Shown here: positions 22,864 through 59,260 of the stretch, piece by piece
Layout of the letters: each line of letters starts with the position of its first letter
How positions within the stretch are numbered: position 1 is the stretch's first letter
Origin: Takakia lepidozioides
Lineage: Eukaryota; Plantae; Bryophyta
Assembly: GCA_030704615.1 (NCBI GenBank)
Contig: CM060732.1
Location: 15,810,001 to 15,874,000 of the forward strand
DNA: 64,000 bases
Direction: 5' to 3'
Notes under the pieces: generated by a model
The model's input: only the letters and a program-made list of their open reading frames with translations
What the model was told of the DNA's origin: nothing
Databases searched by the model: none
Program-made: the position numbers and the translations under genes

Positions 22864-22990
22864 ATAATAGTGCATACACTCTTCTTGGGTTTCGGGAACC
22901 ATATTGCCAATCACCTCCTCAATAGCTGGATCTGGTCTCTGGTCCTCATCTGTTGCCTGATCGTCAACGCAGTTGGTGTGATCTTCATAT

Positions 22991-33508: not shown

Positions 33509-34335
33509 TCACTTTAATATCCCATGTTCCACTTCCAGGGCCTCTAGGTACTTTAGATGTGCATCCCATTCCTCCTTGTTCTTAGGCCATGGAAAGTCCC
33601 AGCGATTAATGAATTTCACTCTAGCATCCTGAAAGTAGATATCCTTAGGTATTCCAAAAGGGTTCTGCTCATTGAAGGCCCAAGTGTCCATTTTTGAATG
33701 CCTCAACTTCTCCAGGTGGGGCTTTAGATGACCCATCATAAAATCATCCTTGTATGGATCTACAAGTGCTTCGTATTTAGGTAGGAAGATGACCAGGCTC
33801 AAAGGATTGAGGAAAGACTTGTACATGTTCCCAACAACGTCGATAAGCAAGGTGTTAGACATGTAGGCTTTAGAGCCGGGGTCTACGAACAAGTCGTAAA
33901 GTCGTTTGAAGTAGATTGGGGCCTTAGGTAGCGTAGGCCAATATGTGTTGAAAGTAATCTATGTTCCACACATTGGTCGGAACTGTAATGCATGACCTTG
34001 TGGGCGTTCCTCCCGAACAAGGCTAATTTGAAATCCACGACAGTCTCTTCTCTGCCAGTGTTCCATAAGATGACCCAAAACTTCTTGATGACCCATTTGA
34101 GGAAGTCTCCCACCTCATGTCGCATTGCTAACTTAAATCTTCCAGCGGAGATACAAGGCTGCGTTGCGGGAGGGGTTTTTGGCCCATTCTGGAGGTAGAC
34201 CTCACATAGGAACCCGACATCCAGAACCAGGACATAATATCCGGGCTGACATCCATTTGGACCCATTGGAAGAGCAAAGAAATCCGCGGGATTGATAGCT
34301 TGGGAATAGTCGTGTGGTGGATAGATCATATCATC
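33509..34335 (-). pseudogene. FCP1/NIF (HAD-fold CTD-phosphatase-like) domain; probably the last exon of reconstructed gene B
   Basis: VLVLDVGFL...RHEVGDFLKWVIKKFWVILWN...DQC...SNTLLID...KSFLNP...DDFMMGHLKPHLEKL follows the NIF motif order. The DxDxT motif is degenerate, and there is one frameshift near 33890. Confidence 0.72.
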
Positions 34336-34422
34336 CTGCCCATTAGGAAATAATTATTAATTCATTGGAAGTTTTTCGCAATGGAATGCAGAAAGGAAAG
34401 CAGAAGGCGGAGAATGAAGTAC

Positions 34423-35287
34423 CAGCTTTGGCGGCACTTGCTCCAAGCCGGATGAGGTTTCGCCGCCAATTCCCTCGGCGATGGGTCTTTCGCTGTCCGG
34501 TATGTTTTTGTCGACCCCTCCCATAAGTAACCTCGCGCGATCGCCCGCGGTTTCTGAAGCTGCCACCTCGGGCAAAGATATCCTCACTCTCAAGTCGTAT
34601 TGTTTCTTCATGGTACGCTGTTGCATGTCGTTTGTTCTAGTATGTGTCACTTCCTCCGTATTGGACTCACGGATCTACAGAAAATGCGGGTGATTAGACT
34701 TCTGTATAAATTTCGATTCATTTACGAGACTATCACAGAGCAATAGGTTATTAGTTCCATTGGTAAAAGATTCTGATGTTATATCAAGTTTGTAATAAAT
34801 TGGGTTTTACAAGTATCAGGACAGCTCATAATCTGAAATACTCACGTCAACAGAGTTTTGATCGCCGACCAATGCCTTAGATGCCTGACCATCAACGATG
34901 TCTCTAACTCGTTGGCTTAAACCTTGATATGGTGACATCCGTAATCGCATATCCCCCTCCACAAGACTGAATCCCACCCCTGAGTCTATTTCTGAAATCT
35001 CCTTATCGAAGACGTCTCTAGAATCAGCGTTATCCTTTACATTGTCTCCCCCCACTTCTTCAGTGGAGGAAGACAACACAGTTGTCTCGGGATTGTCTCC
35101 TTCACCGGTATTTGTCTGGGCCCGTGGATGGTGGTTTTCTTCTGGTACTACCCTCCCTGCTTGTTCAGCTGGTGGATTTCTGCCTTGCTCACTTTGTTCT
35201 GTCTCCTCTTGCAAGAAATTGTTGACGGCATCATCGTGTTGGTAGTCGCTCTTGTCTTCCTCACCTCCCTCTTCTTCATTTTTGTCC
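34423..35287 (-). pseudogene. Acidic linker exons of gene B, displaced by the 19.5-kb insertion
   Basis: Same frame as the NIF ORF. Phase-0 GT-AG introns 34845-34675 and 34422-34336 remove every intervening stop. Contains the element-B palindrome at ~34533. Confidence 0.68.
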
Positions 35288-35856
35288 CAACGACGCAATG
35301 GCGTGAGCCTTGCGCGTGAGCGTACGCTCACGCAGGAGTGACGTGGCGTGAGCATGATGTCTGCAGGCTGATATGGCGACAAATGCTGACGTGGCACTGC
35401 ACCGTCATCTGCCACGTCAGCATGAACATCATGCGCCGCCTATAACCAAGGATGGTCCTATGACCGTGGGATTAATGCAGAGAATCCTTGGCTGAATGCA
35501 ATCAAGACTACCACGAGATCTACAATTGTAGCATCCATAGAGGCTGCCATAGGAAGACCTTGCTCCCTCCCCAAATAACAATGAGAGTTAGGATCATCTT
35601 CAAAAGATGATTGCAGTGCATAGCGACAAGAAAACATGTAGACTTCGAAAGGTGCAATGATGCATGTGCTTTTAAAAGTTGTCACTCAGAGCTCACTCAC
35701 TATAGTTGGAAGCATAATGGAGGGATAAGGGACGCCATATCATTGCACCGCCGATGATGTTGTAAACGAATTGATTTGAATTGAATTTCCATGACAATGT
35801 TGCAAATTGCACATTTCATAGCATGGTCGTCCACATACCACATTGCATAGTTGATG

Positions 35857-38800
35857 CTACCTATGTGTTGTATCCCGCTGCAATAAAGTATCGACCTCGT
35901 TGATACTCAGAGTGGCCTGGTGAACGAAGTTGTCACGTTTGGGATCGCAAACCATCATCTTCAAAAATATGAAATACAAATGTTTGCAAGGTATGAATTT
36001 ACCTCTCTTGCCCAAACTGGTTGATAACATATTCACAAAATCAGGACATGTGCAATTGGGGAAATTGGAAACCGTGATGTCGTAGGCCCTGTCATGAACA
36101 ACAGATGTCGAAGTGATCATTGTGTACACCCGACCATATCCTGGATCGAGCACTTCCGTGGTGCTTGCAACATGAGCTTGGAGCATTCTTGCGGACTCCA
36201 CTTTGCCGAAGTGTTTAGCGGTTGGAGGGAAACGCGGAACCAGCTTTCCATCTCGTTTGGTTGGCCACAAGTGAGGATTTGCCGGAGGGTCCCGAGAGGA
36301 CGCAGAAGTAGAAGCACATGCATGCAGTTGGGGTTGTCTCGCAAGGGAAAAGCCTGCCTCCTCCAGCATTGCAATCTCCTGACTTGTGAGATGTGTTCCC
36401 ACCTTGACGGGCCAAACGGTTGGAGGAGCTGGCTTCATCACCATGGAAGGACGCACAGTTCCATGCACACATCTACCACAATTGTCTTCGCAGAACCAGA
36501 ACTTGTGGTTCTTGGCTTCTGGTTGGCCGTATGGACGCATCAAACCCGTGAAAGTCGGAGCAGGAGTCCGGGCACCGCCTCTGGATATAGATGAAGTGCA
36601 CTTCTCGAAATTAGTTGCTCTGATCGCTGTACATTTCACACGAGACCCTGCACTGGTGCGTTCTATGTGCCAAACGTGGTCGGGGCATGCGGACTCCAGC
36701 ACATCAAGGGGGTAGTTTCTCTCTTGCACCATTTCAGTGGCACTGTTTGATGCTGGAGCCTGCCGTCGTGTCGGAGGTTCCTCCAGAATGGAGGTTCCGG
36801 ACATGGATCTGTCATGCAGGGGAATACGAGGCTTTGAGAAGTTATCACGGTCTGCCCTGTGCGAATCGGAATCCGAACCAAGTGGGGTGTTCAATTTCCT
36901 CTTACAGGAGCCGAATCTCTCCTCCCCTTTAAGATGTGGAACTCTAGAAACAAGTGGCGTTCCCTGGGCATACATGCTTACCGCCCGTGCTATCTTGCTT
37001 GGATCCCCATATCTGTTTGCAGCACGCAACATCAACTCCAGTTTGTCCGGACCCTTGCCACCAACCCCACCTCGCAAAAAATCACGGTATCTGGTTTGTT
37101 GTTGCAAGGCACGTATCAGATCATCTGTTGTTGCCACATACAAATCCCGACCTCATTTCCCAGACTGTTGCAACCATACATTGTGCACAGTTTCTGCCAA
37201 ATTGCAAGATGGCATGTCCGCCATTTCTTCAATGGACATGTTCTGCAAAGTGGAGAACCACACTTCAAAACAGTGCACAGGGAATAACATAAAGAAAGCA
37301 AGGAGAGCAAAATTTGGAAAGTAAATGTATGAATAAAGCAAGCAATAGAAGCCTCACACCATTGTCATGGCTGCTCCCCACTGTCTGTACCGGAAGTGCC
37401 AAAATGCCAGCCAATCTTCCAATGCTCTCATACTCTCAAGCGATGCAGCTCCAGAAGAGAACCACCAGGCACGAATTGTCTGGAACAAAGTGTCCGCCTC
37501 CTTCATTGTTCTAGCATCTTTGTACTCTTTGCACAATTTACGGTGTTGTGTCTGCATCTCTGGTTTGATGTCCGACTTTGTATGTTTCTCCAGAGATTGT
37601 GTCCAATGGAATAGACATGTATGCTCTCTTCCCGACATTGACACTTTTGGGTCGCATGATCCGAAGACAATTCGAACAACATTGAAATTCGCCTGACCAT
37701 TATCTGCCATGAAACCAACAAAATTTGGAGATGGCACCCCATGGCAGCCCATATCAGGGAATTCCACATGAGCTTCTGGGATCTGTATCCTCGGATTGCA
37801 TGTCACAAACTGCAATTGTCATAACTCGTTGGTACACTGGATTGTAGACATGACAAGCCATTGTCGTCCAATCTTTCACTCATTTCACATGATCAAACAT
37901 AAGAAAACAGTTCTGCAGGTCCCCAGTCTTCTCCATCCGCTTCACGAGGCTAACCCCATTGCACTCCCCAGCAGTCGACATTTTGAAAAGAAATACTTTG
38001 ATGGCACCTTGACTTGGAAAAACATTGTCCTGGATGTAGTCATACTTGCTCAGTCGTTTCAATTCCAAAATGTTGTCTATGTAGCCTCTGATCCCAGAGC
38101 CCATTCTCAATGCATTGATTTGATGCTGAATGTTAGGTGAACTCAAAGTGGAGAAATGATCCATGACAATGTCCAATGATGCACCGTCAAGTTTAGTCCC
38201 CACAGAATCCCCTTCACTCAAAATATGGCTTTCCAAGAAGGACTTGCTTGCGCCCAGAGCAATTGCAGATGTTGTTGCGGATGGGTTTATCTCGTACTCC
38301 TGTTTAATCAACCTCCGCACAGCGCCAGGTAGGATGGTACAAGTTTGCAGAATTTGCAAACGAAAGTGGTTGCCGGTGGAGGAGCAGTCCCAGGCTTAAA
38401 TGGATTTTCCGCGACACCCTCCCACTCGCTTTGATTATGAACCCCAGACTGAAGAAAGTGTTTGCAATTGAAATTATTATACCTAAGGTGTCCATTGCAA
38501 ACTGTTCTCCTGAAAACAAGCTTGTCCTCATTTTGAATATAGGATGTTTTTGTTCTGCACCATGGGTGCCCGTCGTGTTTCTTGTCCATTCCGTGCATCA
38601 TGCTTGTAATACCTCCAACTCGCGGAGGAGGAGGCAGCTCGAATAGGATATCCCCATCAAAAGTCTCTGGCAGGAACTTCACAGGCACCTACTTCAAAGA
38701 TTCCCAATCAATTCCCCGCAACTCACTTTTGAAACCTGCCATTCCTCCCATCGCCCGTAGTTTTGGAATGACACTACAAATCTCTTCTTCATCCGCTTCC

Positions 38801-39209
38801 ACAACTACAATACAAAGGACTGGAGTTGGAATTTCACTATTGGAGTGGAGGACGTCTGTTCTTTTTTCACCAACACCTCTCTTTTGTCTTCAACGACTGA
38901 AGCAGCAGTCCCGGGCGTCACATATGATCCAAGGGACTTTCGCCGAGGCTCTCCAAGTACTCTGTATCTACCAGGGCGCACTCTCCACTGGCTCACATGA
39001 GCCGTCTCATCACGGTTTTGGAAAGAGTATTTCAATAACTTCCCGTCCAAATCGTACACCTCTTTCTCCAAGAAGATGGAGCCATTCTGAAGCTCAAACC
39101 GGGTAGCCAAGAAATGTTCCGGAACAATTGCGAATCCATTGTCAAGGGCTTCTTTGGAGAAAGGCACTGGTTTGTCGTCAGAAAAAAACTCTGCTTCGGA
39201 GGAAGCCAT
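35857..39209 (-). pseudogene. MULE/MuDR-like DDE transposase with Cys-rich N-terminal domain and C-terminal SWIM finger; decayed
   Basis: FLMFDHVK*VKDWTTMACHVY...FMADNGQANF...CLFHW (MULE D..D and CxxH motifs); SWIM finger CTCPDF...PCKHLY; N-terminal DGHPW...C.GHL...CKFC. Stops at 37880 and 37153 plus frameshifts. Confidence 0.8.
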
Positions 39210-40295
39210 GTTACGTCCCCGAGCGGGGGGTTCTCTTTCATGAGCTGCTCCTTCGCGAAATCAGATGATTCAGCTTTGCACCACACTGGATGCACATGAA
39301 ATGAGGCGGAAGCACCCGTTCCTTGAAGATTGTGCATATTCTGATATTCCATCTAATCACCTGTGAAGTTACGGAGGACGGTTCCTGGCAAACCGCCGTC
39401 AAATTAACGTATGTGACCAGCAGTCTGCATTGTCTTCTGAGCAATGCTGACAGATGATCCATCAAGTTCTGGGGGTCGCCCCAAAACAATAAAAACCCGC
39501 CGACTTCCTTGAAGACAGCCTGAGGATCCCATGTAGGGATGATGGGAAGAGAATTGAAGTACTTAGATCATTTGTCAGGCCATGACTAGATTCATTATGT
39601 CTGATCATGTTGATGCTTTCAAAATTATGCATGAAATGGCCTAGAACTCTCCACGTACGCATATTCCGTGAAATCCTTAGTAGGCCTCATGCTAAGTACT
39701 TTGAGAATCCTCATCCATGACGATGAACGGTGATATTAATGAAGTCGTCACAAAAAAGACACATGTCCATTTTATGTTTGCACACGCCAACATCCCAAAA
39801 CAGCAGCATAAAGGAACAGCTGTCCCAGTTAGGTTACGTTATTTTCACTAAAAACGTACATTCAAGTATCGGACACGCAAGAGGGAATCCAACGGTTCCA
39901 GGGACACTCCCAAAACGACGGAACCAGTGTTGGGAGGGTATATTGATTCTTTCTACCCTCAGGGTAAGGGTATACATGATTTTGGGGGTCAAACTTATCC
40001 TCAGGGTAAGGGTATAATCTATTTTTTGAAAACATTTACCCTCAGGGTAAGGGTATTGGGTGCCACATATACCATGAGGGTAAGGGTAATTGCACGGTAA
40101 TGGTATCATTTTTATATCCTCTGGATATCCCAGGGTAATTATAAAGGGTACTAAATTAATTTAATTTATGAATTAATTACTTAGAATAAAGCATTTCAAC
40201 CTGCAGCTTTTGAACCTGCAGCTGTGCATTAGCCATCAGCCAACAATAGCCATCTCAGTAGATCAGCGGAAACCATCTCAAACAAAAGACATTGT

Positions 40296-42920
40296 TCACT
40301 CCTCATTTTCATCAACTTCATCTTCAGGCAAACAACTCTCTACCAAGCCTTCCAAATCCTCTTCAAACTCAAGTCCAATCTCATCTAATAAATCAGCCTC
40401 GTTATCTCCAAACTCTTCCAAGTTTGAAGCATCCACACCCAAGCGAGGATCATCGGGCCAATTCTTCACTAGAGGAACAAGCTTATCAAGGTTCTTTGTT
40501 CCAAGCTGACATCGACGAAGGGATGTGAGCACACCCGCAAGCGAAAAAACCCGTTCGGTTTCAATTTGACTTCCAGGAATCCCCAAAATCTGCTTAGCGA
40601 AGAATCCAACTACTGGAAAACGGCTTTCATTCTCCTTCCACCATTGTAGAGGATTTAATTCACATGCTTTGGTATGCAATTGCAAGTTCCGAAAACATGC
40701 AAGCTCTTGTTTAACCTGCAATCATACGGTGAATCAATGATTAAATTAACAAATAAACTAATCTATGATATGTATATGTTTGACATTTAGGCAAGTCTAT
40801 AGTCCATAAATGATCACACTTCAATCGTAAATACACACTTACTTGCTCCATTGTAGTGTGAGTTTCGGAAGCTCCAATACCAAACACAGCATCACTCTCA
40901 AAAACCGCTTCCAAATCTGCATTTCCAGCAACATCCATGCCTTCCAACCCACTTTGTGCCCCATGGTTCTTTCTAGAGATCACAGTAAGCATCGGAATGA
41001 GCAAACGATGGTCATACTCCATGGCAATGTTCTTCGCCGCTGCCAAACCCACATACTTTGTAACAAGTGACAAATCTTTGAATCGAGGGTCTAGCATGAG
41101 GGCAAGCATGTTATGTGCTTTGTGGCGTGTAAAGGCATGCATGAAATCAAGGAAAGGAGCTAGAACATTCTTCACTTGCTCACGCATCCGCGCCTTGAGA
41201 ATCATCAACTTTTGACCAAAATCATGACGTGGGGCAGCCATGACTTGAGCCTCCAACTCGATACACTCGGTGTCCATTCTTACACATATCATCATCACCT
41301 CCCTCAATGCATCACCGAGCAACCAATAGCCTTGTCGTTGGTTGATTACACATGCAGAAACTACCGGTGACAAGGTGCTTGAGATTGCTTCAGCCACGGC
41401 CCACACTTCAGGTGAAGGAACTCTAGTTTGCAAAGCCATGGTTTGATTCATATAACATATGTGAATTGCTTCACGAAACTGCAAAGCTTGCTGGAACATA
41501 ATGACCTTCGAGGCAAAACTGGTCTTCACTGGCGTACTGAGCTTGCGCGGTCTGATTTTACATTCCACACATGCTTTGGCCCACTCCCTTGCCACTCTTC
41601 TTCGGCCAAGTTATGCATGCTTGGATTTTGCTTTGAGCAGCCTTGATGCTAACTGGGGCTAAGCCTTCGCCCAACTTATCATCTGATGTGGCATACTGAC
41701 AAGCTTTGGACGTGGCATGTCCGAAGCATGAGCCTACATATGGAATCAATAGGTTCAAGACATCACAAGATACAACCTGTTTCAAAGCAGTGGTCAAAGT
41801 GTTGGGATTGGCGCCCTCGTCCTTCACATAACATATAATCTTCTTGGTTAAACCAAATTTTTCGAGCAATTCACAGAGCTGTCTTGCCAAAGTAACACCT
41901 GTTGTATCATTGGCCTCAAATAATCCAAGCGTCACGTGTTTGGGTTCCCAGTCATAGGAGAGAAAATTGAGCACCAAACAGAAAGTATCTTGTGCCCCTC
42001 TACTCATCCACAGGTCAAATGTTGCGGTACAAGTAGCACAAGCCTCCAACAATGGTGTCACTCATTCTGCCAAACACCTCTCCACCATCTGAGGTATGAC
42101 CTCTTCAGTCATGGCCTTGCGAGATGGAAAGACACAACGATTATCTCGTCTCAATGTAAATCGCCTCACCCAAATATTCTCAGCAATGCTCAAAGGCATC
42201 AACCCCTTTGCACACATCAACACCAAATCCTCTAGAAAAGCTATTTGATTAGCATCATGTTTTCCATAAGGTGTGGAACTACCAAAAAATTCAAAAATGG
42301 CCCATGCTGCCACTTTACTCCTTTTTTTTTGTAGGCTGCCTCTCGGAAGTGGTTGAGGAAGCTTGAGCCTTCAACTCCTGGGACCATAAATCTAATAATT
42401 CCTTATGCTCAGCAACGACATGGTTTTTCAGATTATTGTTGCCCCAATTTTTGTTCTAAGTAACAAGACCTTTCTTACCCCTTGTTTTCTGAGAAGGTAA
42501 ATGTTGTGAAGCAGCTCTACCATGACATAGAATGCACCGCAAAACTTGACCCTTGCAATTTTCTGAAAGAACCCTCTCATCTGAATTGAAGGCAAAAAAT
42601 GCCCAAGGCTCGGACTTACGGCCATATGGAACCCAAAATGCTTGTTGTTGGCGAAGAAACACAAGTTGCTCCTGATACTGGCCCCCACCACCTTCAATTG
42701 ATTGATTCATCACGCTACTTGATGAAGCAGCAGTCTGTCCTGTTACAGAAGGAATATCTGATATGGTTGAATTTTGCTCCAGGCCATTATGTGGGTCCCG
42801 TATAAGAGGGATAATAGGAACAGTCGCATTATGTCGGTCCCCTTGAAGAGGGATAACATGAATAGTATCAGGCCCCGTCATGTCAAGGCCAAGACTCCAA
42901 TTGGGGTATCTGTCCATCAT
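40296..42920 (-). pseudogene. hAT transposase (BED-like finger, DDE core, hATC dimerisation domain) with stops and frameshifts
   Basis: RCILCH...LKNHVVAEH; TFDLWMS; VKDEG; CFGH; LMLDPRFK; PLQWWKENESRFP...IPGSQIETERVFSLAG. Intron at ~40851-40719; stops at 42456 and 42062. Confidence 0.92.
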
Positions 42921-43019
42921 AAGACCTAAAAAAAGAGCAAATCAACAAATCATTAATGTTATGGCATGCCCCACCATGCTGAGAGAGAAAAAGGGGCTGT
43001 CACAGGAGCATAAGACAAA

Positions 43020-43640
43020 GAATGGAGAGGGGAGAAGCACAATGCACATAAGAGGGAGAGAGTGGGGGCCCGCCATTGGAGCATAAGGTATAAGAGAGAG
43101 CAAGGCCCGACCAAGGTGAAGCACAAGGCAACAAAGACAGTGGCGGGGGCCGCCGCTGGAGCACAAGATGTACAGGAGAGAGAATGATAGGGTAGGGGTA
43201 GAGCACGAGGTCACAAAGAGAGTGGCGGGCCCACTGGAGGGCCTTGCAAGAAGGAGAGAATGAGCACAAGGAGACAAAGAGAGTGGTGGGGCCTGTTGGA
43301 GGGCCTTGCAGGAAGGAGAGAATGAGCACAAGGTGACAAAGAGAATGGCTGGCCTTGTAGGAAAGAGAGAGTGAACACAAGGAGACAAAGAGTGTGGTGG
43401 GCCCGCTGGAACACTTACACTTTGCATTAAGGAGAGAGTGGCGGGGATTGCCGCTGCTCAAGCACCGGCGCTGAAGGAGATGCTTTGCTTGATAGAGATA
43501 ATGGCGGGGACCGAGGAAGGAGACAGCGGCCGTGGCGCCGGGGACCACCGCTGAAGCACAAGCCCTAGCACACTCTTTTTGCAAGAAGAAGGGAGTGGCA
43601 AGGACGCAAGGACCGGTCTTGGAGCACAAGCTGAAGAAAA
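43020..43640. repeat. Degenerate ~60-70-bp tandem repeats in the hAT 5' region
   Basis: Recurring agcacaagg...caaagagagtggcggg(g)ccc...ggagggccttgca units. Confidence 0.7.
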
Positions 43641-44149
43641 CAAAATAAACAAATAAACAAATAAACATGCTAGTGTTTGTCGTTTGCCCTCTCTACTAGC
43701 AAATATCCTAGTTATCAAATTATTATACCCTTCCTTATTACCCGGCCATTGAATAGATTTACCCTGAAATTAAGGGTATCCTTCGAAATTTCAAACCCCA
43801 GGGTATAATCCATTAAGGGTATAACAAAAATAATTATCCTCGACAAGGGTAGGGTAAGGGTATTTTTGAATTTCCAGGGTAGGGTATATCCATATACCCT
43901 TATTGGGTTTTACCCTCAGGATATAATGGCAGAAAAAGGGTATCCTCCCAACACTGGACGGAACCCCGCAAGAAAGCAAGTCTGTTCATCTTTCTTGTTT
44001 CTGCACTTAGAGGAAGAGAGGTAGTCAAGCTGGAAAGGGTTCCTTGTTCGGTTCGGAAGAGGAGGAAGTCATTGTATTTTACATTGCTTAGAGAGAGAGC
44101 AAATGACAAGGCGTCGCATGCAAGATGCACTACAACAGATTGCGGCTTT

Positions 44150-44468
44150 TACGTCTCTGTGTTATGACTGCAAATGCAGTTATGGAAACGTAAAAGCCTA
44201 GTCAGTTGTGACATGGCAGATATGACTCTCCAGGCTGGCTGTGACGTGGCGCCTGAGCAGCTGTGGGGGTAGTCATACACGTTGGCTTTACAAATGACTG
44301 AATGGACAGTGTAGTCCATGTCAGCGGCTGTGCAAAAGTGACACGTGCTCGATACAGAAAATGACACGTGGCAGAGTGTTCGCTCTCCATGAGAGTGACC
44401 TATGACTACGAGCGTGCTAATCCGATTGCAACACGTGGCGTGTTGCAGTTTTTACACGTGGTCCCTCA
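44150..44468. repeat. Cluster of G-box-like (a)cacgtg/gacgtggc motifs, probably the subterminal region of the MULE
   Basis: tgacgtggc, gacacgtgc, gacacgtggc, aacacgtggc and tacacgtggtccct occur within ~320 bp. Confidence 0.45.
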
Positions 44469-45299
44469 GCAAATTGACATGTGTCATGATGGGTTATTTT
44501 GTCTTGGATATATTGCTTTTTTTTTACATATTTGTATTTCCACCACGTGGTGTAGCACTATTGGAGAGTGAAAATAGATGTAGTCATTATTATGACTGAT
44601 AGAAGTCATATACATGTCTATTACAACAATGAAATATAATATATAATACAAACAGAACAAGGCAGCAAAACATAACTGCAACAAGCTGAGCAAATCCAAG
44701 AGATTGTACACCATCTCTATTTATCAATCTATTTATCATTATTATTTTTGTCGCGATCTAAAAATACATAAAATAGTCACATGTTCTCATGTGAATTATA
44801 TTGTCTAATTGTAACACTTTGAAAAGTGTTCACCCAAATCTTCTAACTACTCGTGTATTCCATCAATCTGCAACCCATCAAAAACAAGGGCTTGCATGGC
44901 TTTAAGAATCACTACAACAAGGACATATGTTTGTTTTCCAAGTTCTTGCATAAGATGCACCAAGCAACATTGCATTGTGAGACACTCACTAACTATACTC
45001 CAAAGCGTCCAGGGAAGGTCACTGAGCAACCTGCCAAGGCGGAAACAATTAAGAGAATTATCTAATACCATATATGAAAAACCAATGCCACTGTTGTTTA
45101 TGGTAACTTCTATCCCATGGACTCCTAAACAAACCAAAGCAAACAGGTTGGGTGTGTTGGCGAAGTCAGATACTTCACAAAGAAACATGCACTAAAAATG
45201 AGAGCCAAGAGGATAGGAAGGTCACTCACGTTTATACGAAGACGTCTTGCCCACTGCCCAGCACCCTGCGTCACCCACACTCTATCTCTACTCCTTCAG

Positions 45300-46980
45300 C
45301 TATCCATGCCTCTGCACAAATCAAGCATTCATCCTTGCCTTGTTGCTAGCAAATGACAATGACAGCCTACATTTGGAATAGGAAACACCCAACTCAGCGG
45401 AGCACACTAGGCGCTATGCTGACATGCGTCTGCTACAATCTGAAATGTAGCAGGCATTCACCTTTCTGCCCCGGTTGACCCATCAGTGATTGGGATCATA
45501 TAAGTATTTGTTCCACAACTTCTCCTCATCTCTGTTACCTGTTTTTTGATACTTTCCTGTTGTCACATTGGCAGTATCATGTCAAAGTCACTCCAAACTA
45601 GATTCACTCAACCAGCTAACTTGCAGAATTGAACATGGCAATTTAGGGCCGATTTTGATAAGAGGGAAAAACAGGGTGAAATGTGTTGAAGAAGATGCCT
45701 TCATTAGCAGGGTACCTTCACCCCTTTCCCCATCATTTGCTTTCAGGTCTCCAAAGCCCCATCCCGCGCTCCTGCTCTGCACACCCTGCAAGCATCGCAT
45801 TCCTCGACAGCACATCTCGTTCAGCCATACTCCCTTGGCATCCTCAATGCTCCCACATTTAGCATACATGGCCACCAGAGCAATGTTCAGGATGACATCT
45901 CGTGCTTTTTTTTTTTATGTCACTCTAGTCATCACGGCCAGAGAAACAACAGGATTGCGCACTTGATTGTGCAGAGGTTCAGAAACACCGCTACCATGTC
46001 ACCATGGACCTGCCAGGCCAAGATCCATTCAACCAGCTAACTTGCAGAATTCAACATGAAAATATAGGGCCAAAAAACAGGGTGAAATGTGTTGAACAAG
46101 GTACCTTGATTAGCAGTGTCTGATTTTATCAATTGTGTCGTTGCTTCTGCAGCTTCCAGTTGATCATCTACCCATGCAGGACCTATGATGGACCTCTGTG
46201 CCCTTTCCCAGAGCTGCCAGGCTCACATTGGGCATACATGTCCACCTGGGCATAGTTCAAATGACATGTGGTACAATTCCAGCTTTGACATTGACACCAT
46301 GGATCTGCTCCATTTTCCAGGGCTGCCATGCTCGCATTTGGCATAGATGTCCACCAGAGCAGAGTTCAGAATGACATCTGGTACATTTCAGCTTTGACAA
46401 TATCACTGTGGACCTGTCCGTCCATTCCACAACTATCAGACTCACATTTGGCATACATGTCACCAAGGCAGTGTTCAAAATCAGATTTGGTGTACAGTTC
46501 CAGCTTTGACAATGTCACCATGGACCTCTACTCCCTTTTCCAGGGCTGCCAGGCTTGCCTAAACTTGTGTTCAGAATCACACATGGTACGTTCCAGCTAA
46601 TTTGACGATGTCACCATGGCCTCTGCTCTCTTTCCCAGGGCTGTTAGGCTCACATTTGGCATACATGTCCACGAGGGCAGTGCTCAGAATCAGATCTGGT
46701 ACAATTCCAGCTTTGAGGATGTCACCATGGACCTCTTTGCCCAGTTCTAGGGCTGCCAGGCTCACATTTGGCATACATGTGCTGCATGGCAGAGCTCAAA
46801 ATGACATCTAGTACAATTCCAGCCTTGACGATGTCACCTGAGAACTTTGCGCCCTTTTTCAGAGGTAGCATGCTCACATTTGGCATACATGTCCACCAGG
46901 GCAGTGCTTAGAATCATACCTGGTACAATTCGCGCTTTGAAGATGTCACCATGGAAGTCTTTGCCCTTTTCCAGCCCGCT
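45300..46980 (-). pseudogene. Degenerate, tandemly scrambled PLS-class PPR gene fragments
   Basis: Repeated LELGKEVHGDILKAGIVPDLILSTALVDMYAKC and MYAKCGSIEDAKGV units (about 8 recurrences of catttggcatacatgtc); many frameshifts; internal duplication at 45600-45710 and 46020-46120. Confidence 0.85.
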
Positions 46981-47844
46981 ACCATGCTCGCACATGCTTT
47001 GCCCCCACAAACCAACGTGATGTGGTCAGGTTGAAGTACACCTCTCCCCGTACCTGATTATAGGGGCACATAGAGGACCTTGAGGATGATCTGAAGGGCC
47101 TACCTCTACCCTTGACACTAGACCTGAAATTTAAACTCAAGTTGGGGAGTCTATCTTTGCACAATACCAGATGTAGAGAGGTAAAGGAGATAGTAAATGT
47201 CCGACATGCCAACGGCCTGAAGACGATATCCGTTCTCTGATACAATGCCTGAGTAACATCAAAGTCACTCCAAACCACCACAGATCCACCCAACGAGCTA
47301 ACTTACATGACCCATGGAGGATTTGACTGACCATGAACCCAAGAGGACCTCTTGTGTGTGCTGCTTGTGTCTGTAGTCAGGTAAAGTCGGATTGGTCAGT
47401 GAGAACCACCACGATGCAGCTGAGCGGGCAGAGATTGAAACATGGCCTGCTAAGACCAAGCTGACTCTCCCAAGAACTTTGTAAACATCAGGAAGAATAC
47501 CAAATCATGGTACTAACAGGAGCCAACAACCCACATTTGCAGAATGGACAAACTTCTTCACATCGTACATTAAGAAGAAGCCACACCTTGCGATTGCGGT
47601 TGTCCCACCATCGTGAAGGATCTTTAAGAAACTCATGCCAGCTCTGCTCCGTGCTACAAATTCAGGGCCGAGCGGGTAGAGATTGAAACACGGCCTGCTA
47701 AGACGAAGCTGACTCTCCCAAGAATGGCGAACTCCCAGCCGAAACCTCCTCGCACACATACCCTAGCGTTTCTAGGGTTGCTTGCTTCAGATGCGAAGGT
47801 TGCTCCAACTGCGGGCCTCCCATGCATGTTTGCCCTCCCTCCCA

Positions 47845-48000
47845 CTCGCTCGCTCTAAGTCCCAGCCCTCTCTCTCTCTCCCTCCCTCCCGCTCTTACGC
47901 TCTAAGTCCCAGCCCTCTCTCTTTCTCTCCATCCCTCCCGCTCTTACGCTCTAAGTCCCAGCCCACTCTCTCTCCCTCCCTCCCTCCCTCCCGCTCGCTC
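47845..48000. repeat. CT-rich tandem repeat (cgctctaagtcccagccctctctct) x3
   Basis: Three ~50-bp units are directly visible. Confidence 0.85.
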
Positions 48001-48079
48001 TAATTCTGTTCACGGCTATCGCGATGGGCAACTTTTTAAGTTTTTTAACCTTTTTACAAACCCTATAAGCAACTTTTTG

Positions 48080-48285
48080 ATTTCTTTTTTCTTTTATTTT
48101 TTATTTTAAAGGAAACCTTAGGCCCTTGAGGAGGGGGAAAAATTAACCCCCTTTCGTTTATGGGCCATGAGACCTACAGGACGATCAGCCCAGACATACC
48201 GTCACAAACAATCCCACACACGTGGTAGGGCAGCGGGTTTGAAACCCGAACCACTAGGGTGACATACTGTGCACTTACCAGCCGA
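48080..48285 (-). mobile_element. Possible tRNA-derived SINE
   Basis: Minus strand has an A-box-like cggctggtaag and a B-box-like gggtttcaaaccc at tRNA-like spacing, then a short body and an A-rich tail. No TSD found. Confidence 0.4.
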
Positions 48286-48700
48286 TGTGTTTTTTTTTTA
48301 ATCTTTTGCACTTTGGTTATTTTTATTTTTAATAATAATACTAATATTATTATTATTATTATTCATTCTAGTGGTCAGAGTCTCCGTTTTTCCAAATATA
48401 AATACTCATATATTATATATGTAACCAAAAAAACATACACGTGCAGTCATATAGTGATTCTTCCATGTGATGATTTGGCAGAATGCATTAGAGTGAGAGT
48501 CATAAAGTCATATGTCGGTCTAGCAATATGCACACGTCATTCCAGTGTAGCCATGACCGTGACTGGTAGTCATATCCGCCATGCCAATATTTGTGGTCAA
48601 ACATGTTTGACCTATGTTGCACAGAGTTCGGAGTCATGCAGTCGCATATACGCCTTTCCCTAGACCAACGTTATGACTTCAAAGGCATTTACGACTACAA

Positions 48701-51700
48701 ATGGCATTTCTACCACAAATCTGTCATGATTGCGCACCCATGGGAGTCATAAAAGCCGCAATTTGTTGTAGTGATGGTGCAGCGCTTAGGCAGCATGTGA
48801 ACTTCGAGACAGGTCAAGCAGAAGAGTATGTAGGAAGTGAGATTGAGGTCGCCGCAGTCGTAGCGACGGCTGGAGCAGTGAGCGTAGGTAACCAGACAGT
48901 GCCAGCCAAGTTCATGCCCGAAGACAAGAGAACAGGGGGAGGAGCAGTGGACGCCATACAGGGAGGAAGTCTGCAAACCCTACATCAGACAGAAATGGTG
49001 AGCACTCCATATCCATATACTACTGTTTTCATTAGTCTTGGTGTTCTCCCTTCTAAGTGGAATTCAATAACATGGTTTATCTTGTGTTCAGACCGATGAA
49101 AAATGGAAGAGGAAAGCAGAAGAGGGCGATCCGAGCGATGCAGCCACGAAGCCGAAGAAGACGAAGGGATCCGTAAGTTGTCTCAAACGCACTTCTCCCT
49201 CTTTACTGATGGTCCCCAGATGTGAGAAAAGCGATGATCGATGGCGATCATCGCTTTACAGAAGAATGTAGTTGGTGTTGTAGTTCAGCAGATTCAGGAA
49301 GGGAAGCAGGCAGGAAAGTATACGTTTCAAGGCGAAAGTGATGATCGGTGCCAACCATCACCTTCGCCATTGTTTTATTTAAGCATAGAATGCCAATTTC
49401 ATTGTGATGCAAGAGTGCCAAGGAACTAAAGTCGCATCTTGCAATGACGTAGAAGCGATGATCGGTAACGATCATCGCTTTAAGATCCATTCCCTTCTTG
49501 TTCAGATCAGTTTGGAAATGGCGTGGTCGTTCAGGAAAGTGATGATCGGTGCCGACCATCACATTCAGCTCTCATGGTTTGTGCATCCCTTGGCAGTTAC
49601 ATTGTGATGGTCGGTACCGATCATCACTTTCGGTAATGACTGGATATTACTTCAAAATCCAAACTCGCACTGCAACCCTTTGTAGAATGAAATGCTTTAG
49701 GTTGAAAAATGTCCATCGCACTTCAGATCTGGAATTGCAGTAACAGAAAAGCGATGGTCGGTGGCGATCATCGCCTCCAAGTCCATTTCTTTGCTCTAAA
49801 TCTCATACAATGAAATGCGGAATTATGCTGGAAAGTGATGATCGGTGCCGACCATCACATTCAGACCTCATGGGTTGTGCTTCCCAAGGCAGTCTGATTG
49901 TGATGATCGGTACCGATCGTCACTTTTTGAACGGATTGTCACTACACCAGAATCCAAAAGAGGAGACCAACCCTTTGCGTACTATAAAGATTTAGGATGA
50001 AAGAGGTCCAGATAATTCATAGGAGAAATCGCAATGACACAAAAGCGATGATGTGTGGTTGTCATCGCTTCCAGGTCCATTCCTTCGCTAAAAAGTTCAA
50101 TGAGTGAAAGAAGGGATTTTGACTAAGAGTGATGATCGGTGCCGACCATCACATTCAGACCTCGTGGGTGTGTGCATCCCAGTGTTGTCTTGTTGTGATG
50201 TTCGGTACCGATCATCGCTTGCATCATCCTGATGGTCGGCACCGATCATCGCAGTCTAGTGAGAACTGAGTCAAGGTGCATTGGGAAACCAACTAAATTT
50301 TCCATTCATTTGTTAGAAGACAAAGTGATGGTCGGTACCGATCATCACTGTTTAAAAATGTCTGTTTCCAGAACACCAGTTGAATGTTGCGATTGTGGGT
50401 TTTGGGTATGCAAAAAAATGTAAAGTCTAAGCAGGGAGAAACAGATGCAAAGGGCTCTGGAGAAGGGGACGACTCCACGAAGAGTTCTGAAAACAGCGAA
50501 GACACAGACGAGCCTGAATTGCACTACCTTGACAAGGTGAAAGAACTTATGTCATATCAAAAGGTAAATTCCCGGGAGGGTATTAGGGACATGATCGTCT
50601 CTGGAGGACGTCTTGAAATCCCTCTCTGCCGGATGATCTCCATGCCTGTTGTTCGTCCTCCACTTTTGCACGACATTACCAAGTTGGAAACAGATTTCGT
50701 GCACGGGTATAGAATGGGTGCACAAGTTTTCTACGTCTCACTGAAAGATACGAATGGTCACAGCACAAAAGTGAGCCCAGAGATTACGGACAACTGGGAT
50801 GATTGCTGGAAGGATGTGAATGACGAGTTCGAGGACTCTCTGCTACTTGGACATAACACCCAGCAGTTCTGCAACCACATGTTCTATGTCTAACCATCGC
50901 CTGCTAGCTTGGATGGGGTACATTGCAAAACACCATTCAAAAGACAAGAACAAGCATTGTACTGTGGAGGCAATGGTTCTGGATCCTGGGAACGACATCG
51001 CGAGACTTCTGACAGTTATGCATGACGTGAACAAGTAGGACATCCTAAAAACCCCATTGCCTTTCAAATTGCATGTTGTGCACATTTCAAGTCCAATCGT
51101 TAAATATTTCTTACCTATGCAATGTATATTCTCTGTTTGCAGATCGACAGAGAAATCGCATGTTACTACGAGCTTGGTCCACACACTATTCCGTATTCAG
51201 AGAATTGGTTTGATGAAGCTTGATGAGTTCCGCACAGTGCTACATCCTAATGTAATATTCAAGAAGTGCGAAACAGGAAGAGCTGCAGGGACCCGGTACT
51301 CGTTGACCCGAGATACATTTCTGGAGTACATGTATGTGGTATGGCCCAACCCACTTCTTCCTATCTTCTTCAATACAAATTTGCAATCGTATGTGTTCTA
51401 ATCCAATCGTTGTTACATGTAGCAAGGACTGGCAGAGGCCGCCGAGAGGGGGAAATCTGAGTACTACCGCACTACAGCAGAAGAGCTGAGGACTGCTAAA
51501 GGTGTTGGAGCAGCCATAAAGAAGGAGTACGAGATAAGGAGGAAGAAGCTGATGTCCGCCTTCCTGAAGCAATTGAGAATAGTGGATCCCGGACTTGAGG
51601 AGGAGTTCCTTCTCCAAATCAAATCCCACTACGACAAGCATGTACATCCAGAGATGCAACAGGAGAAATTGCACAGGCTGGCTCTCTCCATGGTCGACCC

Positions 51701-54300
51701 CCAGACAAAAGTTAGATGGCTTGAGATTTGGAACTCGGATCAGACGGTGAAGGATCTGAATCAGTTCCCAAAAAGCACAATCCAGCCTGGCACAAAGGTC
51801 GAGGGAATAAGTGACATTGTTTTTTATCAGTGGCTTCACAAGGCCACATTTTGGAGTCAGGTATTTGTGGATTCAAGTGCCTATTGTATATGAATTATCC
51901 TATAGCTTTGTCATGCGCAATTCTGATACATGTTCCCATTGCAGCTGGAGAAACGCGCCATTCTTGTCCTGGAGCATAATTTGAAGGACTTGAATATTTC
52001 GATGGTCTCACCACCACAGATGACCTTGGAGGCGTACATTAGAAAGTGGAAAGGTCTCACGTGGCGGTATTGTTTCTTCCACGAGTTCTCCAAGGATGGC
52101 AACATATTGAGGTCGAACAATTTTGACAGTCAAGTTGGAGGGGAGTGGGCGATGATGCATGTTGTGTACAGGTGCAGTACCTTAAGCCTATCCATCACAT
52201 TCTTTGAAATTTTGTCATGCCTCATTAAGAAAAGCTTAATATTTCTTTTCTGCTACATAGCAGTTTGGTGATGGTCGGTACCGATCATCACTTCCACTAC
52301 TCTGATATTCTCCAGTCAAACAAATGAATACTGCAGATCATGTCCATGTTTCCATTCTTAATCCTGCCTCTATTATCATAGGGAGTTTGTTTCTGATGAA
52401 TGAAGTGATGGTCGGTGCCGACCATCACATTTCCCAGTTGTGCAGTCTACATAATCATAAGGATTTGCCAACCCATGTTAAATTCTCTCTCATGTGAAAG
52501 TGATGATCGCCACCGATCATCACTTTCTGCTGTTTTTTGATATCTTGTTTTGGGGGTGGTGTTTGTTTGAGCCTCCGCAGGTACACTAAATATGTGCTGA
52601 TGGAAGGAAAACACCTGAGTGGAATCCCAGATTACCTGGACATGTGGTCCGACCCTGCCAACGATCCCACCATGTACACAGCTGGTATCTTGAGGGACTA
52701 GAGTCCTGCCCACTTCAGGGACTGTGGATGGTACCTCGACTGCCCTCCAGAACACACGACATTTCAAGAGCAGCATATGAAGTATTTGAACAACCATGCG
52801 GAAATGCTGGCACCTTTGAACGACGAAGAGTACCAGAGGAACATAGCTTCATTGGCCACCAAGGAGCCAGACGCGCAGGCAACTCCACAGAAAGGCAGGA
52901 AGGGGGGTCGCAAGGTGAAAGATCCAAAGGCTCCCCTCCAAAGGGAAAGACTCCATCCTGGAACAGATTCGATGAGAACTACTGGAGTTGGGTATTCGGG
53001 TTCTACAATAATTTCCTTTCAGATGCAGGAACGCTTTTGCTCTTCTAGTCATGTGACAAGGATAGTCGTAGGGGACTGGCATCATACATGAAGTCGTCTG
53101 GGTTTGAAATTCTGAGAACATGGAATTGTGTGAACATCCTGTACTTTCTGAAAGGTGGTTGCCCTGGACAGCTGGTATGGCACCGCCCTCCTCTGAACTG
53201 TTTCCCAATGTCTTTTCAGTTGTTTCTGCTGGCTTGCTCTACCACCATCTGTGATGATCGGCACCGATCATCACAAATACATTCCATTGTAGTTTTCATT
53301 TGCAGTCCATGTTTTGTTCTTTCCTGCGCCAGACTTCCTTTAATATTTCCATGTCTCACCCCTACCTTGCATCTTTTCCAGACAAGGATGTTTGAGGGAA
53401 TCTGCCTGAGGAGGATTCGCACCTCCAAAACACCATCCTCCGTTCGCAGCTTTGAAATTTCCGACCAGGGGTGTTTCATCAACCCTCCATATGAACCGCA
53501 TGTGGATGACATGCTCTACAATTTCATGCACTCCAGTCAGACAGCCAAAAGACCAGATGGGTTTCCGTGGAGAGGTGCAAGGGAGAGAATCCCAACGTTC
53601 ATGCAGACGCTCTTAGAGTCATGCAGCCACCATTCTGCAAGGGTGGTCGACCTCACACTATCCACATGTTCGTTGGTTCAATACTGTTCCCATTTTCAAG
53701 GTCTTTCACTTTGCATCTGAATATGCATCTTCTACAACCTTCTTGAGACTTTTTGTCTTGGCAGGTGCGACTTACCGTGCTTACAAGGTTGGCAGGAGAA
53801 GCCTTTTTGGCATGGAGGGCGACACCGAACTATTCAAGAGTGTCCTCCTCCCTCTTGTGTCTAGCTCTACGTCTGGCACACAGACTGAACAAATTCAAAT
53901 CAGAAATGATGAGGATACCGAGGATAAGTAGATCGACAACGACTTTTCATGTGAGTAAGTCGGCCATGGAATTGTCATTCCAGCTTGGATGCTTGTTCAA
54001 TTTCGCAGACATCAAATTTGCAATAATAACTATTATCATGCTGTGACTTGCAGGAACAGTAGCGATGGATCTTCAAGAGAAACCCCCATTTGTGCCAAGA
54101 TTGTTTTCGACAGTCCCCTTTCCACTTTTTTGCTTCCTGTCTATGCCGAAGCAATGGCACTTCAAATGGCCGAGGCTCTATCCCCTGACTTCTTATTGCC
54201 CGATCACAGGAGTAGCCATTGTAGATCCGGAGTTCTTAAATTCTTGGACTTGGATGCAGAGGACACGGGGATACATTGTACTGACTCTGAGTCACACTGA
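48701..54300 (+). pseudogene. Gene A: spliced ParB-like + beta-class N4/N6 methyltransferase-like protein; decayed
   Basis: ParB-like IPLCRM...VRP...KLE.DF..GY...MFYV[WDG]NHRLLAW, with an apparent 8-nt loss at ~50891 removing WDG. MTase-like PSWN...WSWVFGFYNNFLSDAGTLLLF*...GFEILRTWNCVN and PWRGARERIPTFMQTLLESCSHHSARVVDLTLST|.ATYRA...GRRSLFGMEGD. Several GT-AG introns. Confidence 0.7.
49231..53274. repeat. 17 copies of a 24-bp palindrome GTGATGRTCGGTRCCGAYCATCAC, all in predicted introns of gene A
   Basis: Starts at ~49231, 49338, 49455, 49539, 49604, 49751, 49835, 49900, 50045, 50129, 50195, 50229, 50325, 52268, 52405, 52500 and 53251. Nine lie in three ~295-bp tandem units. Confidence 0.93.
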
Positions 54301-54786
54301 ACTTCATATTTTTAATGTTCTGTTTATATCCTATTCGGAAATGATTGAATTCCCTTGCCTCATTGCAATTGTTCCGGCAGAAAAGAAAATGAAACAAACA
54401 ATCCACTCGGATTCAAATGTCAATCTTCATGAATCCATCCCACAAACCCCTCACAATTATTCAACATCCATCCCACATTCATCCATCTGCTTGCATTGTT
54501 CCCACACATCCATATATTTCTCATCCACTCTACATTCATCCATCCTGCATTCAACTGTTGCTTTAAGGCGGGGATGACCACGTCCTTTTATTATTTTGTC
54601 CAACTTGTTTCCGCGGTTGAGGGTGCTCTTCCGCGGAAATACACTCTACTTCTTACTTGGCGCGCATTGACGTGGCGTTTAAACTCGATGACGTGGAGTG
54701 AGCCCGTTGACGTGGCGTTCGCTCAAGGTGACGTGGCGTGAGCGCTACTGCGCTCACGCCACCAGGCTCACGCCGAGGCATCCCTG

Positions 54787-56766
54787 TTTTTGTCCAACGT
54801 TTCGTTTCCGTCACCTTCTTCCTGGTTTTGCTCTGTCTCCAGATCTCTTTGTCCGTCATCTTCATCGTCATCGTCATCGTCGTCGTCATTTTCTTCGCCA
54901 TTGTGCCTGTGGGTCTCCTGCCCTCCCAATGTGTCATCACCAACCTTGGTTCCGTCCTCATTCTCCGTGTGGAGGAGTGTGTAGTTAGTGGCAACCTTAT
55001 TCGTGCATAATTTCTTTTTCAGGTTGTGATTTATATCAAGGACTCGGACGTTCCTAGCCTAAAAAAGATACCAACCATTGAGTAAATAGAATGAACGCAT
55101 GATCGCGCGAGGTTCCAAAGATGTGTTTTAGAAATGGAAATGGAAAAGGAAATCGAATTGGAAATGGAAATGGAATTGCTTACGTGGAGAGCCGATGTTA
55201 ACATTACGCCTCCAAAAACGTTGACAGCCGCCATCCCTTCGCCACAGAACAAGGACGCAATGTAGTCGCTCGACTCTGCCCGCAATTCGTGTTCATAAAC
55301 GGCACAATCTTTCTCGTGTTCTGTGAGCTCAGTGTCCGGAGCCTTAATCACTGGTTTAATGTGGCTGAACATCAGCACTCCCTGCTGTAGCAGGAAATAC
55401 GTAATCAAGGCACATGAGTGGCCTTGAAAATGACTTTGGCCGGCTCATGTAAGGATTGTCGAACTCTCCAGGAAGATACAACCCCTGAAGCAGAATATAC
55501 TTGTCCCGCCCCTCGCCAAACCTTATGTATGAAACTAGATTGGAAGAGGACCTTTGCGTCGAGAAGAAAACAAATGCATTGGGACTGAGCTGATGTTCGC
55601 AAAACGCAACGAAAATATTCTTGTAATTTTTTTGCATGAAAACAGTTGAGTCATCGTCACAGACTGTGTTGACGAACACCATTGCGATGTTATTGAAATC
55701 CCTCTTTCTCACAATTTTCAACTGTGTTTTGGCATCCGTGAACCTCCGCTTCCCTCCTATGCACTGGTAATGTGACTTGAAGGTATCCTCGAGGTTGCCC
55801 ATTTCCTTCTCCATGTCTTCAACCCTTTTTTTACATGAAAGCACGTATTTGATGAAAGCGTCACTCACTTTCTCGGTCTTCATATTCATGTTCACTTTGC
55901 TTTTCATGTATTTGGCTCCCAGTTTCGATCGGAATGTCTCGAACTCCGACTTGTTGAACTTGTACCTTTTCTTCACTTCGAGCCATTGTGCTTTTGTGTA
56001 CGGCTCTGGATGCTGCTTGCTCCTGGCATCAAATCCCAATACCACCATGACATCATCGATTATAAACCGCCTGTCCTTTATTCGATCGATGTAATCGGAT
56101 AGGCAGAGAATCTTGGGGGTCTTTTCCCTTGTAAGGGCCATGAACACAGATCTTCAAGTCCAAAATCTTCTGCGCAACCTTCTTCATTTGAAGGGGGTTC
56201 AATCCTTGGAGTTTGCAGACTGCAGATTTTGTGAGGTGCGATTGTACACCCTTGTGCTTCTTTCCGTTAATGTCCAAGAGGTTTGCCTTCTCCCGCTCTC
56301 TGAAAACCTCCTGCCACTTCTCCCAAACAACGTCATTGCAAAGGACCAAGGTCATGGCCTCCTTAACGCTAAGCATCTCCAATATAAGTTGTGAGACTTG
56401 CAAAAATTCCTGGTCAACAGGAACAGCATGTCAAGCCAACACACAACAGGGACACACAGTTCTAGTGAATGTACAACAAAACATTAAACAATAAAAGAAG
56501 TCTAAATAATTACCTTCCACTGAACTGTTTCAGATTTGGAAACGTTATCGTTGAATTTCCTGGGCTTCCCCCTCAACTCATAGTACATCTTGGCGTGAGC
56601 AATTTTCTCCGGGAATGTTGTGTCGAATTTTTGGGCTTTATTTGGGTCGTTCAGGAGCTTAGAAATCTTCAGCAATCGATTATTGCTATCTGACCAGAGG
56701 ATAATTGATGGCCATTTGGCGTAGTAGTCCCTCTGCTCCCGGCCAGTAATCTCCTCCACAAGTTCC
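54787..56766 (-). pseudogene. Gene B, 5' part: putative ParB-like C-terminal half + degenerate methyltransferase-like fold + acidic region
   Basis: Exons 56766-56514, 56409-55184 (two frameshifts) and 55058-54787. YYAKWPSIILWS...LLKISKLLN; ELRAESSDYIASLFCGEGMAAVNVFGG..LTSALH|ARNVRVLDI parallels MTase motifs X/I/II; poly-Asp follows. Confidence 0.55.
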
Positions 56767-56854
56767 TGATTTGGAAAATGTTACATCGGCATAGAATTGA
56801 ACTAGAAAAGAGCACACGTGATCGCGCGTGCTTGCTTATCATGCTATGCATCTC

Positions 56855-57412
56855 TTAGAAACAAGTCGTCGATGCATCTGATATAAGGTGGCTAAAGTAT
56901 CCTATTGGTGAGTATTCTGGGGATCCCGGAGTATACCCTGGCGATGAGGGTGTATACTTTGGGGATGCCGGAGTGTACTCTGGGGTTGAGGGAGTGTACT
57001 CTGGTGATACGGGAGTATACTCCGGGGATCCGGGTGTATAATCTTGGGTATCTGGCGTATACATAGCGCATAAGTCATTTGATTCCGCCGATACTTCAGC
57101 TACAGGATCTCCGGAAGACCCTCCACAGTATTGTTCTAGAAAATAACTTAAAGCTGCTGACCCGGGAGGAACGTTGCAAAAATATACTATTGGTGAATAA
57201 TTGTCCTGATCGTCTGATTCAGGGGAGTAGGTGTCAGTCTCCTCTGTGGATGGAATTGTAGAAACTGGAGATGATATCACATGAACTCCTTCGGAAGGTC
57301 CCGTTATAATAACCGCAGCTCCGCATTCACCTTGTGAGGAGGGTGAAAGCGTTGCCTTGTGTCCGGCATGTTCCATCTCCTTCTCCTCCTTCATCGAACA
57401 CGAATCCACCAC
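56855..57412 (-). CDS. ORF with RNA Pol II CTD-like heptad repeats
   Basis: [52 protein letters not shown], with 21-bp periodicity at ~56900-57062. Confidence 0.6.
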
Positions 57413-59167: not shown

Positions 59168-59260
59168 AATCAATCCAAAAATCAAAACAACTAATCAAAA
59201 CAATCAAAACAAACAATCATTCGTTCAAACAATCAAACAATCAAACAAACAATCAATCAA
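59168..59260. repeat. (aatcaaaac)n-like microsatellite
   Basis: Directly visible. Confidence 0.8.

Follow-up and report, generated by a model that had tools for sequence, protein, structure and literature searches.

In a 64,000-nucleotide window of the moss Takakia lepidozioides (contig CM060732.1, positions 15,810,001 to 15,874,000; positions below count from the first letter of the window), repeat-rich eukaryotic DNA carries open frames on the minus strand to either side of a block of 19.5 kb. We consider it probable that this locus is a pseudogenised accessory gene of about 1,000 codons and five exons (E1–E5), belonging to a large, plant-type DNA transposon whose hallmark is palindromes of the CGCGCGATCGCGCG type, and interrupted by an unrelated 19.5-kb transposon. 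The predicted protein would comprise, in order, ~420 residues from E1 and E2, an acidic linker of ~235 residues from E3, the short E4 and, within the single exon E5, an NIF/FCP1-homology domain of the HAD type that would belong to a subfamily with the signature ‘LVLDxNG ... LLIDDSPYK’. Intact family members of the host transposon would carry the gene as an accessory gene and join all exons into one protein, a fusion that is plausible because the internal exons lack ATGs and somewhat better than an even bet. The second transposon inserted itself into the acidic exon, duplicating 9 bp of target sequence.

A single DNA transposon, flanked by a target duplication of 9 bp, makes up the block between the two halves of the gene. 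This duplication, GGACAAAAA on the minus strand, is perfect, and because its two copies bound the block, the insert is delimited exactly, at 19,499 bp (Table 1). The ends of the insert form an imperfect terminal inverted repeat of 22 nucleotides, in which 16 of the 22 positions match (CAGGGATGCCTCGGCGTGAGCC against the reverse complement of the other end, CAACGACGCAATGGCGTGAGCC). Both ends share two subterminal motifs that are concentrated in the insert: of the nine copies of GCGTGAGC in the window it holds eight, and of the seven copies of GCCACGTCA every one, most of them no further than ~120 bp from an end. The insertion site is inside the acidic coding exon E3, where the upstream frame has base 54787 as the second base of a codon and the downstream frame has base 35278 as the third. 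Excision of the insert together with one copy of the duplication yields an in-frame ...TLDK-N-EEEGG... with acidic low-complexity sequence on both sides; an uninterrupted exon would read ...TTGGACAAAAA and then directly TGAAGAAGAGG.... The duplication coordinates and codon positions thus bear out an earlier annotation of this DNA, made from the sequence alone (hereafter the first-pass annotation), which had claimed that removing 35288-54786 and one duplication copy rejoins the frame.

The gene model was assembled from frame changes combined with GT-AG signals. Downstream of the insertion, the open reading frames (ORFs) 34816-35415, 34357-34650 and 33883-34329 share one frame, and introns I3 and I4 together remove all five intervening stops, with GC contents of 0.33 and 0.38 against 0.47-0.54 in the exons. 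The earlier proposal of three ORFs in one frame, linked by two phase-0 GT-AG introns that clear every stop, therefore holds. Since the frame survives skipping of E4, the coding status of that exon is uncertain. Upstream of the insertion, I1 exactly explains the frame change between a frame-2 segment ending ...VQWK and the next open segment, and the junction at I2 would put the long front-half frame in phase with the acidic E3. To judge from their splice signals and frames, three of the four GT-AG introns that fit the frame changes are well supported and one, I2, is weaker. E1 and E3 both lack an ATG close to where they begin and so fit internal exons, which favours one long gene over several; no start codon of the gene was found.

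Two frame breaks absent from the first-pass annotation lie in E5 (~33958-33886) and E2 (56153-56056), and both are best read as frameshift mutations. Counting the insertion, the copy thus has no fewer than three breaks; with these and no start codon found, it is dead and cannot make the protein. Introns were rejected as candidates for either break: the E2 region has no acceptor with a pyrimidine tract, and a 47-nucleotide GT-AG intron in E5 would remove ~12 conserved positions of the domain profile described below.

Palindromic repeats tie the two flanks of the insertion together. A 21-nucleotide motif at 34528-34548 recurs at 61078-61098 as its exact reverse complement, in agreement with the first-pass annotation, which had placed these copies at ~34533 and ~61079 and taken them to link both sides; a search for the motif allowing up to three mismatches gave five matches against 0.00 expected. 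The palindrome core GCGCGATC, of the CGCGCGATCGCGCG type, occurs 12 times in the window, exclusively at 34535 and within 55101-61086, with zero copies in the insert and zero in the left 30 kb of the window. Because the core is confined to the two flanks, both belong to one element family.

The only part of the predicted protein with detectable relatives is its C-terminal exon. PF03031 intermediates, an independent profile and a fold model together support the reading of E5 as a genuine NIF/FCP1-homology (HAD) domain. Here and throughout, searches used single exons or stop-free pieces as queries. A phmmer search with a 148-residue piece against 1.84 billion representative proteins returned two matches only, P0001 (E 7e-6) and P0002 (E 1e-3), short proteins (318 and 348 residues) that stand alone. 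Both are PF03031 (NIF) proteins, matching the family at 2e-13 and 8e-15, above the Pfam curated cut-off, and pairwise BLASTP of the window piece with P0001 gave E 7e-14. We then built a profile, A2, from 18 relatives of P0001 (all but one with PF03031), leaving the window sequence out, and searched it with all filters off against 2,015 stop-free segments from both strands of the window. The first rank went to segment 34353-33886 (E 4e-11, profile positions 61-155) and the second to segment 33958-33512, which lies in a different frame (E 0.026, profile positions 160-244); no other segment scored. When compared with the second piece by hhalign, A2 aligned over 95 columns at E 6.6e-4, and these columns take in the C-terminal helix region of the subfamily. 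As the two halves are collinear and adjacent, they make up a complete NIF domain in one exon, split by a frameshift between ...DQCVEHRL and ...LPKAPIYFKRL. Furthermore, an AlphaFold model of the first half, computed with an alignment of NIF proteins (A3), reached a predicted local distance difference test (pLDDT) score of 83-92 in its core, and the 13 PDB entries that Foldseek ranked highest were all CTDNEP1, SCP1-3 or Fcp1 (E 0.04-0.4, template modelling (TM) score 0.3-0.37).

The catalytic residues did not survive in this copy. Motif I reads LVLDV-GFL, with the first aspartate kept and the +2 position lost by a one-residue gap, compared with LVLDxNG in the nearest subfamily and DxDxT in classical enzymes; the catalytic DxDx(T/V), which supplies the nucleophile and general-acid aspartates, is thus incomplete. 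Motif IV reads LLIDVVGNMYK against a LLIDDSPYK that is invariant in the 18 relatives, and lacks the Mg2+-binding acidic pair (DD or DxxxD). With these acids lost, the NIF domain of this copy is, on its sequence, not a competent phosphatase. Of the FCP1/NIF phosphatase-like domain named in the first-pass annotation, the NIF homology stands, while the catalytic motifs I and IV are degenerate. Lacking the general-acid aspartate of motif I and the aspartate pair of motif IV, the module is more likely a phosphopeptide-binding domain or pseudo-phosphatase than an enzyme.

Comparison with known proteins places the domain among the NIF families. Its closest sequence relatives, at 28-32% identity, form the ‘LVLDxNG ... 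LLIDDSPYK’ subfamily (P0001-P0021, e.g. Vitis vinifera CK203_009508, labelled TIM50-like), with which it has in common the blocks RPH..FLxW, VVWST, DQxxC and NTLLID..YK and the C-terminal helix region. Unlike the window copy, in which one residue of motif I is deleted and DDSP is gone, the subfamily proteins stand alone, are 200-400 residues long and have retained the motif IV DD. To the NIF/FCP1-homology HAD phosphatases at large (PF03031: SCP1-3/CTDSP, CTDNEP1 (Dullard), Fcp1, UBLCP1 and TIM50) the domain is related over its whole length via intermediates; motifs I, II and IV follow one another as in those enzymes, and these proteins supply the best PDB matches of the fold model. It differs from them in motif I (LDV-GF instead of DxDxT) and motif IV (DV instead of DD), in lying at the end of a predicted ~1,000-residue transposon protein, and in not being reached by the Pfam model. 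The motif differences suggest that the window domain is non-catalytic, like TIM50, another NIF fold without catalysis.

Transposons are known to pick up host domains. Host-derived domains occur in accessory genes of plant DNA transposons, such as the Ulp1-like protease in the MULE/CACTA ‘Kaonashi’ elements, and Pack-MULEs capture host genes. The window gene resembles these cases in carrying a cellular-type domain, in frame, in a second gene that is spread as numerous, mostly dead copies, and differs from them in that the domain is of the NIF/FCP1 type and lies beside an ORF resembling the C-terminal domain (CTD) of RNA polymerase II (Pol II).

This CTD-like ORF ends ~90 nucleotides upstream of E1 on the same strand, and its seven heptads match the Pfam family RNA_pol_Rpb1_R at E 0.1 only. 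It may be an upstream, first coding exon of the gene or a neighbouring gene; the former could apply because E1 has no ATG. Among candidate in-frame splices from the heptad ORF to E1, many combinations fit and none is convincing. A possible partner of the NIF module would be the Pol II CTD or the heptad ORF itself, and such a partnership could favour transcription of the element or blunt its silencing. The most far-reaching version, in which intact members bring together a CTD-like heptad array and an NIF/FCP1-type (pseudo)phosphatase, in one protein or two adjacent ones, and so mimic or capture the host machinery of CTD phosphorylation for transcription or for escape from silencing, is a long shot. 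Were it true, the paired heptad and NIF module would represent a transposon strategy so far undescribed. In the literature searched, we found no description of an NIF/FCP1-type domain in a DNA-transposon accessory gene beside a Pol II CTD-like heptad ORF, and the combination appears to be undescribed. The dead copy itself shows nothing about function; if intact copies are expressed, they would offer a concrete handle on how mobile elements interfere with CTD phosphorylation or silencing pathways. What the locus does provide is a clean dated event, one element landing in an exon of another, together with an exon-intron model that is nearly complete and, for the first time here, independent statistical support for the NIF nature of the domain.

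Several points weigh against a single NIF-bearing accessory gene. The Pfam NIF model gives no direct match to the window pieces at E-values up to 10, the domain having been searched in halves, and direct PHROGs, NCBIfam and PDB sequence searches with single pieces of the NIF exon gave no match either; the PF03031 assignment was reached through PF03031 relatives. The Foldseek E-values are weak, true NIF proteins made up the alignment that steered the fold model, and the catalytic residues might be lost only in this decayed copy. Exact look-ups of the encoded proteins and two metagenome scans found no uninterrupted copy, and what places all exons in one transcript is their splice signals. The proposed role at the Pol II CTD is pure inference. 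Finally, I2, which links the front half with the acidic exon, is the least certain junction because its GC content shows no drop relative to the exons.

The weakness of I2 bears on the alternative that the locus holds two or more head-to-tail minus-strand genes, a front gene (56765-55356, with a TAA after ...ADVQPH) and an acidic-plus-NIF gene, and no fusion. Besides the absent GC drop, separate genes would account for a 265-codon frame that stops at 55358-55356, just 14 codons past the proposed I2 donor, and for the stand-alone state of the two public relatives of the NIF piece. Set against this, the acidic exon has no in-frame ATG anywhere upstream of the linker and starts directly after the strong acceptor CTTTTTTAG, as an internal exon would, and all parts keep the same strand and the same order. 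We regard separate genes as unlikely.

Alternatively, only the NIF exon might be meaningful, as a decaying fragment of a host NIF gene captured in the manner of Pack-type elements, with the other ‘exons’ being chance open frames in repeat DNA. That no other part has a detectable relative fits such a capture, as do the frameshifts and degenerate catalytic motifs of the copy. Chance frames, however, would not be expected to be as long as those of the front half (84, 118 and 251 codons), to be related by a frame change that a precise phase-0 GT-AG intron explains, or to include an acidic exon that stays open across the target duplication; moreover, the domain sits in one exon with its subfamily-specific C-terminal extension and is not a partial fragment. 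This explanation seems to us improbable, and we retain the five-exon accessory gene.

The front half (E1–E2) had been labelled ParB-like/methyltransferase-like, a label that found no support in any library. Region 56780-55359 gave no match in Pfam, PHROGs, NCBIfam, PDB sequences or the ESM atlas, and a 263-residue piece of it none in a search of 5.8 billion proteins. Neither ParB/Srx nor methyltransferase families matched at E-values up to 1-10 (Pfam, PHROGs, NCBIfam, PDB), and the region has no similarity to other parts of the window, including a gene inside the insert that had been labelled ‘ParB-like’. A single-sequence AlphaFold model of the front piece had a pLDDT of 35 and is unusable as a fold. 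When the front half was searched for a further NIF-like domain, be it a second or a third, hmmsearch with filters off found none, and hhalign gave only E 0.47. The full reading of the first-pass annotation, in which a CTD phosphatase is functionally fused to a DNA-handling module of ParB-like/methyltransferase-like type, draws on real C-terminal NIF homology and on motif impressions only, such as ...GEFDNPYM resembling a DPPY-type motif, and is highly improbable given the lack of any ParB, Srx or methyltransferase match or of paralogy with the ‘ParB-like’ gene, a gene broken in at least three places and degenerate phosphatase motifs.

Table 1 Features of the split gene, the nested transposon and the host element (window positions; minus-strand features are given in reading direction where the start exceeds the end; a slash marks an exon–intron boundary; nt, nucleotides)
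Feature	Position	Strand	Remarks
CTD-like ORF, seven YTPxSPx heptads	57439-56858	-	Resembles the RNA polymerase II CTD
Exon E1, 84 codons	56765-56514	-	Begins after acceptor ...CCAAATCAG/; no family match
Intron I1, 104 nt, phase 0, GC 0.365	56513-56410	-	AAG/GTAATT ... TTGACCAG/GAA; T-rich
Exon E2, ~336 codons	56409-55401	-	Bulk of the region earlier called ‘ParB/MTase-like’ (MTase, methyltransferase); frameshift in 56153-56056
Putative intron I2, 342 nt, phase 0, GC 0.45	55400-55059	-	TAC/GTATTT ... CTTTTTTAG/GCT
Exon E3, upstream half, acidic, poly-Asp	55058-54787	-	Frame stays open across the target duplication
Target duplication, copy 1	54795-54787	-	Last 9 bases of the upstream half of E3
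Nested DNA transposon, 19,499 bp	35288-54786		9-bp duplication, imperfect 22-nt terminal inverted repeat, GCGTGAGC/GCCACGTCA subterminal repeats at both ends
Target duplication, copy 2 (GGACAAAAA)	35279-35287	-	Identical to copy 1
Exon E3, downstream half, acidic/low-complexity linker	35278-34846	-	In frame with the upstream half after excision
Intron I3, 171 nt, phase 0, GC 0.327	34845-34675	-	GAC/GTGAGT ... TTTCTGTAG/ATC (ends CTGTAG); removes 3 stops
Exon E4, 84 codons	34674-34423	-	Contains the 21-nt host motif 34528-34548
Intron I4, 87 nt, phase 0, GC 0.379	34422-34336	-	CTG/GTACTT ... ATGGGCAG/GAT (ends GGGCAG); removes 2 stops
Exon E5, NIF/FCP1-homology domain	34335-33512; stop codon 33511-33509	-	Frameshift within ~33958-33886; motif I LVLDV-GFL, motif IV LLIDVVGNMYK
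Transposase-like open frame, 584 codons, with 60-codon continuation	61182-62933, on to ~63059	+	Points away from the split gene

Beyond the split gene, the host element contains a transposase-like frame with a CCNLQCC cysteine cluster, which past one stop continues ...FLCIIHDKMDHRKTTIP; frame and continuation span 61182-63116. The ORF has no family match in Pfam or in the search of 5.8 billion proteins and ends before any catalytic core, being cut off at 63059 by the right copy of a 0.8-kb repeat. A Sola-type element would have a DDE transposase of the Sola/DUF7869 type and a target duplication of only 4 bp; with the transposase-like ORF cut and lacking a family match, and with no ends or target duplication delimited for the host element, the Sola-like label given by the first-pass annotation was not confirmed. 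The 0.8-kb repeats, 30346-31155 and 63059-63858, are inverted and 82% identical and together bracket the whole host element, and at their outer ends lie short tandem arrays with CCGACACAG-like units of 9-10 bp. Possibly they are long terminal inverted repeats, in which case the host element would be a deletion derivative of ~14 kb, the insert excluded. Among the GCGCGATC copies are a tandem triple at 57479-57498, one in the predicted exon E4 and one in the predicted intron I2 (55101). The observed/expected ratio of CpG reaches 0.89 to the right of the insert, across 54787-63858 of the host element, as against 0.53-0.57 for the insert itself, for the host part on its left and for the left flank; the high value stems in part from the CG-rich palindromes and may also reflect less methylation-driven decay.

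The nested insert resembles a Mutator-like element (MULE) in its 9-bp duplication and a weak SWIM finger. For a Mutator-like assignment we looked for a target duplication of 9-11 bp, terminal inverted repeats and a MULE transposase with a SWIM finger. The insert has the duplication, the terminal inverted repeats and, close inside one end, an ORF of 428 residues (35857-37143, minus strand) with a C-terminal CxC...CxH zinc finger of the SWIM type, which matches Pfam at E 0.008, under the Pfam cut-off. It differs from Mutator-like elements in that its terminal inverted repeats are short and imperfect, in having palindromes of its own, and in that no MULE transposase domain was found in or near this ORF. 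Internal repeats of the insert, tandem or dispersed, are 73-80% identical (46188-46992 and 49534-50220).

Elsewhere in the window, a young Ty3/gypsy retrotransposon occupies 15929-22863. Its long terminal repeats (15929-16657 and 22180-22863) are 98.8% identical, and it encodes the full set of gag-pol domains in an intact gag-pol ORF of 1,207 residues followed by an integrase/chromodomain ORF. A second element with reverse transcriptase and integrase (22582-25616) adjoins it on the opposite strand.

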